Source: Podarcis filfolensis (taxonomy: Eukaryota). Taken from it: 64,000 nucleotides of DNA. The stretch is taken from the NCBI GenBank assembly GCA_964270895.1, contig OZ185437.1; one strand, written 5' to 3'. A program made the translations under genes and the position numbers. This document shows positions 13,701 to 60,664 of the stretch, one piece after another; the first letter of the stretch is position 1, and every line of letters starts with the position of its first letter. The notes under the pieces were generated by a model. It saw only the letters and a list, made by a program, of their open reading frames with translations, searched no databases and was not told the DNA's origin.

Positions 13701-15499
13701 GAATGAAATATGCAGGCACATACAGTAGATTGAAACCTATCAAGTTTCAGACAAATAGATGCAGGGGTTTTTAATGTAAGCAAGCTTTACATTTTGAGGT
13801 GTTTTGTTTTTTTAAGGATTGCCTATAACTTTTTGAATTTTTCATCAGAAGAAATTTGGAGTGGGGGTGGAAGAAGGGGTTAGATATTTGTTCCTGCTCA
13901 GTTGATGCTAGCCAACCATTTCCTTCTACACTGCATTACTGAAAGCAGAGGGGGAAAGGAGTGTCCAGGTAAAATGATCCCTTGGTTGGAAGCAGAGCTG
14001 TCAACCATAAAATTATACCTTTCTCCCTCCTACTCTCTGGTGCTTTCCTTACATAGAGAGCTTGCAGGAAAATCTATCAATTTTCATACATTTGCTGCCT
14101 GTGTCTCCGTGCCCTTCCAAATCTCTGAATTGGTCTCAAATGGGTTTCTGAACAGCCCAATTTGGCTTGGATGACTCCTGAATCTTTCTGAGGCAGCTTG
14201 CTTCAGTTCTTGGATTCACCTAGACTGAATACACACCTCTGGCACATATCACACGCAGAGACCATTGAAAAGAGGCATTATACTATTGGCTCATGTTCAG
14301 GTAATTCCTATATCCTCTTTCACCTTCTGCTTCTGTGCCAGCATTTAGCCATTTAGTGATGGCATTTATGCCATGCTCTGCAAAGATCAGCTGCAGAGCA
14401 GAGCGGATGAGCTGCTCCCTGCAGTCTATGTCCATATGTTCTTCTTGTCTCCTCAATCTCCCCCCACGTTTTTGCATTTGACCCCTTCTTGTTGTAACAC
14501 TGTAGAATCTAAGAGGAGCTATGGTAGGCCAGTCCAGATGTTCATCTGGCCTAGTAAGTTGTTTTATATTGTTTTTAGTATTGTGTTAATGTGTAACACA
14601 TCCTGGGACCTGAGGGAGAGGAGTAGCAATCAATCATCATCATCATAGTATTCAGTTTCCAGCTGAATACTGGTAGGGTAAGAAAACAGCAATGCTACCC
14701 ACATTCATGTCCAAGCATATGGTATTTTGAAATATACCTTCTACTGTATTCAAATGTGTTCTGTCTTTATTTTGTTGTTGTTAGCCAATATATCAATTTT
14801 ATTTTTTTGTACCATTTCAATTCAGATTTGTTTTAAAAATCTGTGCTCCAAAGCACTTTGCAGTGCCACTCAATTCTGTCTCATTGCTGTTGTGTGTCTT
14901 ACCTAGTCCTTAATTAGGATGAGGCAGAACACCAGAACCTGAGTGGAGCAGAGAGTTCAAGAAGTGCCACAGAGAAAACAAAGCAGATACTTTCCTCCCA
15001 GATATCATTCACTCTGTGCATCATAGGTGGTTCTTTTCAGCCAATTAGAGCAGCGAGAAACCAGTGTGGATTACAGCTTCCTATATGTATGAGCTGTAGG
15101 CATTCAGTGTTCAGAATTACACTTGGTTGAAAAAGTATGGCTTAGGTAGCTGCTGACAGTCCGGTATCTGTTGTTGGCACCTGCTTGCCTAATTTCCATA
15201 TAGTTACACCCCCCCCTTGGGCCTTGCACGTCAAAATACGTTTCGATAGGCTTAAACGTAAATTTACTTGATGGCACTATTTGTTAGTTTTAACAAATCC
15301 CCTGAGATGTCCTGTGCATTTCTGCAAAGCTCTGCATCGCAAACTTCTTCCTGATCCCAGCGTAAGGCTGTTTCTATTTTCAGAAGGTCTCCTTCCTGAG
15401 TCTGTTTGGCTGGCTAGAAGCAAGTGCTCAGAACAGAGCATCCTTTCTGTATCCCGAACTCCTTTCTTCCTTCCCAGCTAGGCAAGAAAACAAATACTG

Positions 15500-16900
15500 A
15501 GAGCAGCACGTGCGCAAGCGTCGGGTGCTGCTGCTGGATCTGCCTTTACGCTCGGCTGCCCAGCTCGGACGTGCGCCCCCCGCCGTGTTTGGATGATACC
15601 TTTATTTGCAAAGGCGAAGAGGCAGATCCAGCCTACCCACCCCCACCCCCCTCTCCGATCTGAAACGGACGTGTCTTTGGCCATCCGCTTTCCTCGCCTC
15701 CTCATTGTTGCACGCGCGTTACGTTGTTGCCAACAAAGGCGATGTGGCAAAACCACACACAAGGGGGACAAATCATCATAGCAGCGAGGAAGGAAAAGCC
15801 CGTCTTGAGATGTGTCACACATCCATGAGGGGATGCTTCTGCCTGGCTTTTGCATAACCCTGATTTGCCTGCCTCTTTTTCTCCTCCTTTTCTGAAGGAG
15901 GCAGCGCTGGAGAACCGGGGGGGGGGGGGCGGGCGCCGAGCGGGAGGGGAAGAAGACCGAGAGCCAAGAGCGAGCGAGGGGGCGGCGGGGGGCTCTCGCT
16001 GCCCTTCTCCCACAGTACGACCTTCCCCGCGGAAGGAGCTGCTGTGGGTGCGCGGCGCCAAGAGGGGGCCGCGAGAAACCGAGGGGGTGGCGGTCCCTCA
16101 CAAAAGGAGACCCCTCTGCCTGCGCGCTCCGTCAGCCTCGGCTCTCCTTCTCGCCCACCCCAACCCGGCCGAGCGGCTCCGACTTCCTCGGCGAGCGGGT
16201 CGAAACCGCGAGGCTTCGCTGCAGGGGGGGTGGGGTAGGTGGGAGGCGAAGCGGGAAGACCGCGGCGACACCAGCCGGCGTCTTCCACAGCAGCAGCAGC
16301 AGCAGCGACCCCGCGCGCGCCTCACATCGCCACCAGCAGCCCAGCCACCTTCTCTTCCCCCCCCCTCGCTCGGTCGCGCGCCCGCCGGTCGCGCGCGTGC
16401 GCGAGCCCCAGGCTGAGTCCTTTCTCTCTCCGTGTCTCCCTCTCCTGCTTCTCTCTCTTTCTCCGAGCCTCCTCCATCCAGCACCGGCGCCGAGGATGGG
16501 CAGCGAGAGCGCGCGCAGGAGCAGCCCCGGCTCGGCCGCTCCCCCCTGCGCCCGCTCTTGCTCGTGCTGCTCCTCTTGCCCCGCTGCCCCCAGGGCGGCG
16601 CCTCGGCTGCGCTCCCGCCTTTTCCCACCGAGGACGGGTGAGTGAAGGAGTGGCTCCTCCCTCGGAGCACCTGCTCTAGCCGGCGAAGGGGGTGGCGGCG
16701 GGGGGCGGGCGAGGGGTGAATTTTGGCGCGCTCTCGGTCTTCGGGGCAAGTGGTGGGCGGCTGCCTGAGGGGGACAAGTCAGTCAGTCAGCGGCATTCGT
16801 GCCCCGCAGGGAAACGGAGCAGGCTCGCTTTTGGGCAGCCCCTCATAGCTGAGGAGACCGTCTGAGGGAAGGAGAGCGAGAAAGGGAGCCTGTTCTTGGG
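15500..16900 (+). promoter_or_regulatory. FUT9: CpG island, probable TATA-less FUT9 promoter
   Basis: Abrupt GC- and CpG-rich block in an otherwise AT-rich, CpG-depleted window. Contains GC boxes GGGGCGGGC (15926-15934, 16702-16710), an NRF1-like GCGCGTGCGC (16393-16402), an E-box CACGTG (15507-15512) and G-tracts. It is the only such island upstream of the FUT9 CDS. Assignment to FUT9 is inference. Confidence 0.8.
16260..16637 (+). other. FUT9: Candidate FUT9 exon 1; 5' boundary (TSS) uncertain, 3' boundary at a consensus donor
   Basis: Donor ACGG|GTGAGT with GT at 16638-16639, near the 3' edge of the CpG island and preceded by a pyrimidine-rich leader. The TSS cannot be fixed from sequence alone. 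Confidence 0.65.
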
Positions 16901-19900
16901 ACGAGGATAGAAACAACAGCTTCCCAATCTCGGGTCCAGCGCCCCAGAACCCTCCAGCGTGGTTTCTGAATAGCACGTGTCCCTCTTGGCCTCTGGGATC
17001 ACTGGGCACCTTCTTCCTCTCGCTCATCCTTTTTTTACCCATTTTGAGTCCTCAGCCCAGCCGAAGAGACCTTTCTCTGAGAGCTGCTCCTTTCCGAGCA
17101 GCTATTAACTTTTCCTGATTTTTTTGGTGGTTGTTTCGAAAGAGAGAAGTGGGTGAAGAGGAGCTGTGGAGGTTTTCCCCCTCGACAGTCCCTTCATGCC
17201 CTTGCAGGCTTCTCTCCTTTCCCTCCTCCTCCTGCTCCTTGCCGTACAATGAAGTCTTTAAAAGAGATTCCTGCTTGCCCGCTAGCTGGCTGGGCTCGCG
17301 CCAGGACTTCTCCACGGGAGCGCTGGACCATTCCTCGCGACTGAGCAAAGAATGCCATCTATGCAGAAGAAGAGGGCACCCTGCACACCTGGCTCCCCAG
17401 GGCTGCGGTGATGTGATTGGGGGCCATAGGTAAGCCGTTAGGATGTTCTCAGGGCGAAGGCAGGAAGGAGACGCCAAGAATGAATGGCCAAAGCACCCCA
17501 CCCCTCTTCTTAGGTCTCCTTCCAGATGGGAGAATGGGGATGTTGCATTACTGAAATGCCTTTTTCCTCTTCCCCCTCCCTTTATATCGCTGTAGGCTGT
17601 GTAGTATTTTCAGACTATTTTCAGTATTTCAGTAGTGCTCTGTGGAAGGGTTGTTATGACAGCAGTTTCTCTCTCCACTCACCCCCCCAACACCCCATCA
17701 TTACTTTATAGACAGCATCGCTGGCTACATTAGAAACATAGGTTTTTGAGCCTGTTGCTGAAGTAACTCTGCAATCTTGTAATCTTGGAAATATGAGCAT
17801 ACACACACACATACACCTGAGTCAGTGTTTATTGTAATAATGGTTCTGCTGAACTGAAGAAATTGGAGCATGTAGTAGTAATCCTACCATAATTCCTATT
17901 TGGGTTTTCGGTTTTCAGTGCATGTGTGTCTGTCAAATATGACAAAGGGACTTTTCTTCATTTATACTGCAGCAGCATAGATTTTGGATTATAGGACAGA
18001 AATGCTTTAAAAAAACACACACACCACATTCACACACAGTAAGTTGCACAGGCACAGTGAAATGTCTTTTTGAATACTGGTATCTACCTAGAAACCAAGG
18101 TTGTAGCACTTGATTTGTGAACCTGTACTTGATTTGTGAGCATTGACAGTAACTTTTGAGAGCTCCTGATAGCTGAAAACTAGGTAGTAATAGTTGAAAC
18201 CTTGTTGGTAGTTCAAAACTATCAGTTCCATGGGTTTTTATGGCAATGAGTCAGTCTGTCATTACTAGTAATGGTTATGTCATGGAGGGTTTGCTTTTCT
18301 ATCACCATATTAAGCTGTAGCTCAAAAGCTATTGCTCTGATTTCTCTTCCCCAAAAAATTATTTTCAGAAAAAATATAGCATTTGTATATATATGCATAC
18401 AATGGTGTCACATGTGAAAAAAGAGAGAAGTGGTTCCTTGTTCTCTTTTTTCACACGCGACACCATTGTATGCATATATATACAAATGCTACATTTGTGG
18501 TTCCTTGTTTCATCTTAACCTTCACCTTCCCCCGCCCTTTTAAGGTAAGCATTATTTCATTAGCCACATGTGAAGGGTTGTAACTTAAACATAGAATTCT
18601 ACCTCCCCCTCGTTTTAAAGGCTTTTGCATTCGTAACACTTCAGCCTAGACCTATGAGAAGTTTACCTCCATATATTTAGAAACCTTTGTTCTATGGAGA
18701 ATAGGAAAGGACTACAGTACAATAAAATAACTAGAGGAAGAAATAAAATGGAAAATGCAACACAGTGCCTTTGTTTGCAAAAATAAAATAAAATAAGTGT
18801 CTAATATGTTCACCATAATATAGGGAATGAAAAATTAAGTAGAATAATTGCTATGTACTAGTAATAAAGGGAATAAAATAAGAAATAATTGCATCTATAG
18901 ACAAAGAAGAATTCTGCAGACTTGCCTTAGTACAAACACTGGTTAGATAAAGTAATTTATTAAGAAATTGGAATTAATTGGAACATTTGTTATTGGATTG
19001 TACATTACATTAAAGCAAATATCAGCTGGATCTTTTATCCCTTAAACTGAACCAACATCATGAACAGGCACCATGATCCATGTAGCAGCAGTTGCTTCAG
19101 ATACCTTACAGTTTGACATAAGCCTGTTGCTGCTGGTTCAATAAAACTCTGATGACGGTGCTTAGTTAGGAAAACTCCAGGCACTGAACCCAATCTAGAG
19201 ATCCTCTGTGTGTGACAGGTGGCTGCATGCCTGCATGCTGTTGTGCACGAGGGCTCTCCATTTGCACCCACCATACAGATAGTTAGCTCCATTGGAGTGA
19301 GACTAAGGCAGGACTAGGGGAAACAATTTTAATTCATTGATCCCACTTCTTCAAGCAAATGCCAGCCAACCTACTGTTAAGAGATTAACATACACAGGCT
19401 TAATTCTGCAAAGATCACTGATATGACGGAACAGCCTTGCATGCTGAATAGAAAGGTTTAGCCGCCATCCACAAGAACATTTTAGGTACATGAGATGCAC
19501 TCATTATGGTGACCTGCACCCAGATTGGTTTTGCCAATCAGCATGAAATTCTAGTATCCCATCTACACCTGGGGAATATCTGCACCAGAATAATCACTGA
19601 CGGGGTGAAGGTGAATTTTAGCTTAGACTGAGCTTAGGATAATACTTCAACACAGGTATATGGAAGATACTTGGGGCTTATTGACTTTTAAGAAGGATTG
19701 GGCTGGCAATTCGTACTTCTGTGTGTGTTTTTTATTTATATACCTTGGACTCTGATTTATTAAAACAAAATATCAAAGTTCAACAGTATATGCTTATCTC
19801 GCTTTGTCTTTGTAACAGCTCTGTCAAGGTAAAAAGTTAAGTCGTCCAAGGCCAATGGCTGAGCATTATAGCTGAGTGGATGGCTGAAGTAGTGGGGGGG

Positions 19901-59532: not shown

Positions 59533-59580
59533 AATTTAACGCTTGATGATGACTTCCTATTTCCATCTTCCCTTCACAGA
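59533..59580 (+). promoter_or_regulatory. FUT9: 3' splice site of the FUT9 coding exon (branch point, polypyrimidine tract, CAG)
   Basis: TTTAAC branch-like motif at 59535-59540, then ACTTCCTATTTCCATCTTCCCTTCACAG|ATCAAATTATG. AG is at 59578-59579 and the exon starts at 59580, 8 nt before the ATG, consistent with the known FUT9 layout of a non-coding 5' part plus one coding exon. Confidence 0.9.
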
Positions 59581-59587
59581 TCAAATT

Positions 59588-60664
59588 ATGACATCATCAC
59601 CCAAAGGAATTTTCCGGCCATTTCTATTTATCTTCATCGTGCTGGGATGCTTCATGGCATGTCTGCTTATTTATATCAAACCGACAAACAGCTGGATATC
59701 TGGTCCTATTGAATCAGCCAGCTCTGTTCTAAAAATGAAGAACTTCTTCTCCACCAAAAATGATTATATCAATGAGACAACTATTCTGATATGGGTATGG
59801 CCGTTTGGCCAGACATTTGATCTGAAATTCTGCCCAACATTTAACATCCACGGGTGCCATCTGACTACAGACCGCATGCTATATAACCAGTCTCATGCCG
59901 TTCTTATTCACCACAGAGATATCAGTTGGGATCTGACTAATTTACCTCAGCAACCTAGGCCGCCATTTCAAAAATGGATCTGGATGAACTTGGAATCACC
60001 AACACACACTCCACAAAAGAGTGGCATTGAGCATCTATTCAATTTGACCCTCACTTATCGTCGAGATTCAGACATTCAAGTGCCTTATGGCTTTATGGTA
60101 GTTAGCACAAGCTCCTTTCCATTTGAAATGCCGAATAAAGAAAGACTGGTGTGTTGGGTGGTGAGTAACTGGAACCCAGAGCATGCTAGGGTCAAATATT
60201 ATAATGAACTAAGTAAATACCTTGAGATCCATACCTATGGACAAGCATTTGGAGACTATGTGAGTGATAAAAATTTGATCCCAACCATCTCCGCTTGTAA
60301 ATTTTACCTTTCCTTTGAGAATTCTATCCACAGAGACTATATCACAGAGAAGCTTTACAATGCTTTTCTTGCTGGATCTGTGCCAGTCGTTCTAGGTCCT
60401 CCTCGAGAAAACTATGAGAATTACATCCCTGCTAGTTCTTTCATTCATGTGGAGGATTTTCTCTCTCCAAGGGACCTCTCAGAGTATCTTCTTTTGCTCG
60501 ACAAAAATGATAAACTGTATGTTAGCTACTTCGACTGGAGGAAGGATTTTTCAGTGCACCTTCCTCGATTTTGGGAATCACATGCATGCCTTGCCTGTGA
60601 CCATGTAAAAAGACACCAGGAATACAGGTCGGTTGGCAATTTAGAAAAATGGTTTTGGAATTAA
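59588..60664 (+). CDS. FUT9: Alpha-(1,3)-fucosyltransferase 9 (GT10 family, type II Golgi membrane protein), single coding exon, 358 aa
   Basis: Uninterrupted ORF MTSSPKGIFRPFLFIFIVLGCFMACLLIYIKPTNSW...EKWFWN*. It has a short cytosolic tail and TM segment, HHRDISWDL, WIWMNLESP, VCWVVSNWNPEHARVKYYNEL and the GT10 motif FYLSFENSIHRDYITEKLYNAF, with N-glycan sequons NET, NQS and NLT. It closely matches vertebrate FUT9 as I recall it. The start is placed at ATG 59588, not the ORF-track start at 59543, because a splice acceptor lies at 59578-59579. Confidence 0.98.
   Translation: MTSSPKGIFRPFLFIFIVLGCFMACLLIYIKPTNSWISGPIESASSVLKMKNFFSTKNDYINETTILIWVWPFGQTFDLKFCPTFNIHGCHLTTDRMLYNQSHAVLIHHRDISWDLTNLPQQPRPPFQKWIWMNLESPTHTPQKSGIEHLFNLTLTYRRDSDIQVPYGFMVVSTSSFPFEMPNKERLVCWVVSNWNPEHARVKYYNELSKYLEIHTYGQAFGDYVSDKNLIPTISACKFYLSFENSIHRDYITEKLYNAFLAGSVPVVLGPPRENYENYIPASSFIHVEDFLSPRDLSEYLLLLDKNDKLYVSYFDWRKDFSVHLPRFWESHACLACDHVKRHQEYRSVGNLEKWFWN

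Follow-up and report, generated by a model that had tools for sequence, protein, structure and literature searches.

The FUT9 gene lying in the window (the whole stretch of 64,000 nucleotides of Podarcis filfolensis DNA analysed here) possesses two distinct 5′ exons, ending at 16637 and 17429, which feed one common acceptor in the spliced contigs of RNA run X3. The first of them, exon 1a, gives an open in-frame start, and the second, exon 1b, leaves only the start further downstream. We consider it likely that this arrangement reflects a genuine long-tail isoform of FUT9 switched by alternative 5′ exons, in which the additional tail is probably a functional segment of the protein. As a prediction the long form is not new, since it is already present in RefSeq and UniProt as FUT9 isoform X1 of Podarcis muralis and Lacerta agilis (P0191 = XP_028578835.1 / XP_032999342.1 / A0A670IHL8_PODMU, 408 aa). 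This entry is the same product, its first 47 residues being the translation of 16496-16636 with DQI next. Other sauropsids also have an isoform X1 of this kind, as in Eublepharis (XP_054848510.1), Rhineura (XP_061482250.1) and Gallus (XP_015140150, 410 aa). All these entries are automatic gene models, and the window holds a closely related, not identical, lacertid sequence that differs by M97T. In the literature searched, no paper was found to describe a longer version of FUT9 or an extension at its N-terminus.

In brain and stem cells, Lewis X (SSEA-1/CD15) is mainly synthesised by FUT9. The product of the large exon in the window has 358 aa, is 92% identical to snake FUT9 and matches Podarcis/Lacerta FUT9 at 357 of its 358 positions, M97T being the sole difference. 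It is a FUT9 orthologue, and its homologues carry the Pfam domains PF17039 and PF00852 (GT10 domains). At codon 97 of this reading frame (59588-60664) the window encodes Met, the residue being Thr in Podarcis muralis/Lacerta agilis, Zootoca and Pogona. Upstream, the ATG at 16496-16498 is flanked as ccgAGGATGG (A at -3, G at +4) and is the single ATG between 15836 and 16637, the nearest one further upstream being located at 15833. From this ATG to the end of exon 1a there are 142 stop-free nt (47 codons + 1 nt), and the donor cgg/GTGAGT cuts directly after 16637. The acceptor of the coding exon at 59580 reads ...cccttcacag/ATCAAATTATG, so that the join generates the split codon G/AT followed by CAA ATT ATG, in frame with the FUT9 ATG at 59588, and a long product of 47 + 3 + 358 = 408 aa. 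An earlier, sequence-only reading of this DNA had put forward the same sole ATG of the candidate first exon, its strong context, the 142 open nucleotides and the in-frame join to 408 aa, and all of its arithmetic was reproduced. The sequence is free of N over the whole window, and the coordinates of the features are collected in Table 1.

Table 1. Position of the FUT9 5′ exons, coding exon and associated elements in the window.
Feature	Position	Strand	Basis or detail
CpG island with FUT9 promoter and exon 1a	about 15250..16750		GC 0.52-0.72, CpG observed/expected 0.74-0.93 (500-nt windows)
Exon 1a, transcribed 5′ UTR, minimum extent	16436..16495	+	RNA contig X3 record 14 on 16436-16637
Exon 1a, coding part, MGSESARRSS...LFPPRT	16496..16637	+	from the ATG, 47 codons + 1 nt; 47/47 match to RefSeq isoform X1
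Exon 1a splice donor GTGAGTGA	16638..16645	+	used in X3 contig record 14
Alternative 5′ exon 1b, non-coding	17149..17429	+	X3 records 15 and 16; donor tag/GTAAGC after 17429
Common FUT9 coding exon	59580..60664	+	acceptor 59580, linker AT CAA ATT, ATG 59588, stop TAA 60662-60664

It is important to bear in mind that, from the sequence alone, the frame of exon 1a and the phase of its junction are within chance expectation. Exon 1a has ~75% G+C and all three of its reading frames are nearly open, and 69% of composition-matched shuffles are stop-free over 46 codons; the in-frame join to the coding exon has a chance prior of 1/3. The open frame of exon 1a was dropped as evidence on these grounds (P(no stop) = 0.69 by shuffling), and the ATG-free 660 nt upstream were likewise discarded as a sign of selection (P = 0.37, dinucleotide-preserving shuffles). 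The exon 1a observation rises above chance only because of the RNA and comparative evidence. A (CAG)6 run is also found at 16276-16316, within the promoter or towards the 5′ end of exon 1a.

The RNA survey covered positions 14000-19800, and the junctions derive from run X3, a set of assembled contigs from one study whose RNA status is an automatic guess; its contigs are spliced and the run has no depth over the intron. X3 contig record 14 (235 nt) lies on 16436-16637 without mismatch; beyond this, a further 29 letters match 59580-59608, a 29-mer with a single occurrence in the window. Because the contig runs on into this unique 29-mer, the junction 16637>59580 exists, and because it starts at 16436, ATG 16496 is transcribed with at least 60 nt upstream of it. 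The junction singled out by the sequence-only reading is thus present in a spliced contig, which begins upstream of the ATG, rather than downstream of it, and passes directly from exon 1a to 59580 with no obligatory frame-breaking middle exon in between. The place where the contig begins is a CT-rich, low-complexity microsatellite at 16436-16464, and the true 5′ end of exon 1a may be situated at 16436 or further upstream. The same contig carries 4 extra letters somewhere within 16436-16637, for which the CT microsatellite is a likelier site than the ORF; inside the exon 1a ORF, they would cause a frameshift in the animal concerned. The exon-1a and exon-1b junction forms have a similar X3 depth, about 3x each, and the raw-read RNA run X19 contributed one partial read only over the surveyed region. 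Runs X1 and X2, listed as "RNA?", were rejected as expression evidence, their even cover of intron and intergenic sequence at 95-99% identity indicating genomic DNA. These two runs, which have the same species label, differ from the window by ~1-2% and by several small indels, e.g. 15 nt inserted behind 17008, and their source is probably a different population or a close relative.

Positions 17149-17429 are covered by X3 contig records 15 and 16, of which the second ends in the same 29 letters of 59580-59608, so that exon 1b uses the same acceptor 59580. Exon 1b holds five ATGs and, as all five terminate within the exon, only the short 358-aa enzyme is possible from exon-1b transcripts. X3 contains no contig joining exon 1b to exon 1a, and exon 1b could be either a first or an internal exon; a possible acceptor for it is seen near 17143-17150, behind a pyrimidine tract. 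The sequence-only reading had attributed the toggling between long and short forms to the inclusion of a middle exon, and this part of it has to be replaced by a second 5′ exon, ending at 17429, spliced on the same acceptor.

The conservation of the extension was approached by an enzyme search with the 358-aa FUT9 together with homologue cluster look-ups, which retrieved this extension in many annotated FUT9 entries. The isoform X1 of Podarcis muralis / Lacerta agilis (408 aa), compared exon by exon, is identical over 47/47 residues, and the same 47/47 identity is observed in the geckos Heteronotia, Eublepharis and Paroedura as well as in the amphisbaenian Rhineura. Vipera and Hemicordylus retain 44/47 residues each, and Pseudonaja has the extension with four differences from the window (manual count on the alignment). 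Relative to five full-length squamate proteins, 3 of 235 positions are changed in the extension and 119 of 1790 in the catalytic core (Fisher p = 3.6e-4, a protein-level proxy whose comparisons are phylogenetically non-independent); on this count of protein sequences the extension is more conserved than the catalytic core among squamates.

In birds, nine proteins (Anas, Anser, Gallus, Athene, Falco, Pezoporus, Theristicus, Larus and one more) share MGSESA.RSSPG.AAP.C, CC, SCPAAPRA and a final PPRT in a single frame. Their extensions vary in length, always by whole codons, and share the splice phase of the lizard, T and then (D/E)QI-M. Across the 18 squamate and bird sequences, 23 of 49 alignment columns are invariant, and every one of these sequences retains the start ATG, the Gly codon and the phase at the exon end. 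The ATG, the frame and the Cys cluster to which the sequence-only reading had drawn attention are hence kept, at the protein level, in lacertids, geckos, an amphisbaenian, a cordylid, viperid and elapid snakes, and birds, and in >15 species the gene models connect these exons in an identical phase. The extension is low in complexity, and its length changes sit in Pro/Ala and Cys/Ser codon repeats; whole-codon length changes are weaker as coding evidence because triplet slippage in repeats favours multiples of three. Between lizard and birds there is no convincing similarity in the frames ahead of the conserved Met. Among birds ~23 codons upstream of this Met are kept in frame, and bird conservation is not confined to the ORF. 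Of the bird models of Theristicus and Larus (P0005, P0006), P0004, P0136, P0139 and P0142, some insert an in-frame middle exon of 52 residues between the extension and the enzyme, and others start at non-conserved ATGs farther upstream. A tblastn search of the window with this 52-aa bird middle exon and with the alternative N-terminal pieces of Laticauda/Python, Liasis, marsupial and frog forms gave no match at E <= 0.05.

The distribution of the long form is bounded by several searches. A word search with the exon-1 peptide alone (candidates of 26-82 aa) gave no match, and one with residues 1-50 of the gecko long form retrieved only Vipera and Hemicordylus at E <= 10, with none from mammals, turtles or amphibians; bird extensions are too low in complexity to score in this latter search. 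Metagenome contigs scanned with a degenerate pattern, back-translated from the first 18 codons, had 0 matches. Among the members listed, Zootoca, Elgaria and Erythrolamprus have short or differently extended FUT9 only. No long form was found in the mammal, turtle/crocodilian and amphibian clusters among the members listed, up to 40 per cluster: all turtles, Alligator, mammals and amphibians listed have a short or differently extended FUT9, and the longer forms in these clusters use unrelated short pieces. The sampling carries an ascertainment bias, as annotation pipelines give a long form solely when its frame is open.

Constraint of this depth might act on the nucleic acid rather than on the peptide. 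Under such an explanation, exon 1a would owe its conservation to an element of the CpG island, either promoter-proximal or in the 5′ UTR, that acts through transcription-factor sites, an RNA element or translation control; its ORF would be incidental, and the annotation pipelines would simply have taken the longest ORF. An open frame is what composition predicts here, every frame being nearly open, and the 47/47 identity between gecko and lacertid, lineages that diverged roughly 200 My ago, exceeds the conservation of the enzyme and is unusual for a disordered tail. The upstream codons kept in birds point in the same direction, and it should be considered that we infer the translation of the long form and that conservation was measured on protein sequences. 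However, the three blocks conserved between birds and squamates remain in one frame across at least 2 length changes, and two further length changes within birds are of whole codons too. The invariance of the ATG, the Gly codon and the exon-end phase is in line with a coding role, as is the unconvincing lizard-bird similarity upstream of the ATG. The predicted RNA fold of 16436-16637 is ordinary (z = -1.1), which neither supports nor excludes an RNA element, and no Rfam match was obtained at E <= 0.1. Furthermore, Vipera and Hemicordylus have 3 single-residue changes each, a core-like rate, so that the segment is not frozen everywhere. Taken with these observations, a purely nucleic-acid constraint appears unlikely.

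At the structural level, AlphaFold2 was applied to the gecko 408-aa orthologue with a 31-sequence alignment, and gave a pLDDT of ~30 at residues 1-57 and a helix at residues 59-79, equivalent to residues 9-29 of the short form. In this model the type II topology of FUT9, an N-terminal tail followed by one transmembrane helix, is preserved, and the extension is predicted to constitute a disordered tail ahead of the signal-anchor. The tail contains 8 R+K vs 1 D+E, together with 5 Cys, 8 Pro and 10 Ser. Under the positive-inside rule, the charge of the tail, as read from its sequence, fits with a cytosolic placement. The Cys residues of the squamate tail are C18, C22, C24, C25 and C28, and birds have four or five; at least 4 Cys occur in each of the 18 sequences, in a tail that is N-terminal to the predicted transmembrane helix. 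These residues lie ~31-41 positions before the start of the helix and are not membrane-adjacent, and S-palmitoylation of the cluster is possible, although it is not implied by the sequence. For a myristoylation pattern of the PROSITE PS00008 type, squamate GSESAR fits and bird GSESAP fails (Pro at the sixth position). The RLRSR run of the squamate tail is absent in birds. A search of the ESM Atlas for look-alikes of the tail returned none usable.

The preferred reading of a long-tail isoform can be articulated as follows. Exon 1a, extending to 16637, would act as a real first exon of FUT9 within the promoter CpG island, and a transcription start anywhere in 15834-16495 would make ATG 16496 the first AUG of the exon-1a mRNA. 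Once exon 1a is spliced straight to 59580, the reading frame would be continuous with the enzyme and the transcript should yield mainly the 408-aa FUT9. Given the strong context of the upstream AUG, scanning ribosomes would produce the long form for the most part, and some of them would leak through to the canonical AUG, which has A at -3 and A at +4. The cytosolic tail would in this way grow from ~11 to ~61 residues, as a basic, Pro/Ser/Ala-rich and predicted disordered segment with a conserved Cys cluster. Exon-1b transcripts would provide the ordinary 358-aa enzyme only, behind several short upstream ORFs, and the choice of the 5′ exon would set the length of the tail in a B4GALNT2-like manner. 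The tail is most likely a functional protein segment because it is kept across squamates and birds, and, by analogy with other glycosyltransferases, its most plausible role would be to help associate the enzyme with membranes or to direct its sorting inside or past the Golgi. Translation from the upstream AUG, any lipidation of the tail and any effect of it on localisation are all inferred.

A more ambitious version of this reading, which we regard as doubtful though worth stating, envisages a sauropsid-specific FUT9 module absent from the mammalian models listed. The tail would then be lipid-anchored, by myristate on Gly2 and/or palmitate on the Cys cluster, or metal-binding, and would shift Lewis X synthesis to a different compartment, or gate it, in neural tissue, and the near-absolute conservation among squamates, above that of the catalytic domain, would reflect a specific binding partner or a double constraint, on the peptide and on the promoter-proximal DNA.

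The same start codon could instead serve mainly for translational control, capturing scanning ribosomes and thereby lowering or tuning the output of the canonical enzyme from exon-1a transcripts, with the tail being tolerated rather than functional. The A -3/G +4 context of the upstream AUG vs the A -3/A +4 of the canonical one indeed implies that most ribosomes should start upstream, and the five upstream ATGs of exon 1b suggest that translation of the FUT9 mRNA is generally damped. Nonetheless, the capture of ribosomes needs an AUG alone, which leaves the 47-residue identity of squamates and the four Cys and motifs shared with birds unexplained, and since the ORF is in frame an active enzyme would still be made, all of which renders a mere control device improbable. 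It is scarcely conceivable that the junction contig is an assembly chimera and the exon-1 ORF meaningless, for even though it is a single contig of ~3x depth in a run whose RNA status is guessed, its two parts meet precisely where a consensus GT donor and an AG acceptor 43 kb away would place them, a second contig does likewise from another consensus donor, and independent models in >15 species use the same exons in the same phase.

If the long form is real in reptiles and birds, tail-dependent sorting of FUT9 would be ancient and regulated in a large part of the vertebrates. Work on Lewis X in chicken and lizard should then consider two FUT9 proteins, and the comparison between sauropsids and mammals could reveal the role of the tail and why mammals appear to manage without it. 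The case of FUT9 also shows that uncharacterised N-terminal extensions lie unnoticed in automatic annotation.

Different precedents exist for glycosyltransferases with tails of alternative length. B4GALT1 and FUT4 have long and short forms that originate from two in-frame starts and different transcription starts, and that differ in the length of the cytoplasmic tail; in those enzymes both ATGs are in one exon, whereas the upstream ATG of FUT9 is in a separate exon 43 kb away. FUT9 itself has been treated as a monoexonic coding sequence with a very short tail (PMC3479001), a view that the sauropsid long form contradicts. In the mouse and rat Fut7 genes, an alternative 154-bp exon gives rise to a longer N-terminus (PMC3479001). 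Like FUT9, Fut7 encodes a GT10 alpha-1,3-fucosyltransferase, and its extra 5′ exon of ~150 bp encodes a longer N-terminus, but it is another paralogue and the arrangement occurs in another lineage. B4GALNT2 uses two alternative first exons (1L and 1S) for its long and short forms, and with the long tail the enzyme is also located in post-Golgi vesicles (PMC9959560). B4GALNT2 belongs to an unrelated enzyme family, the tails of the two enzymes have no sequence similarity, and for FUT9 a comparable shift in localisation would be conjecture; in FUT9, moreover, the short form has a non-coding 5′ exon and takes its start codon from the common exon. With these differences, B4GALNT2, which like FUT9 is a type II Golgi glycosyltransferase, joins either of two alternative 5′ exons to common exons, with transmembrane and luminal parts that are identical between forms and an unusually long cytoplasmic tail in the long form, as would be the case for FUT9.
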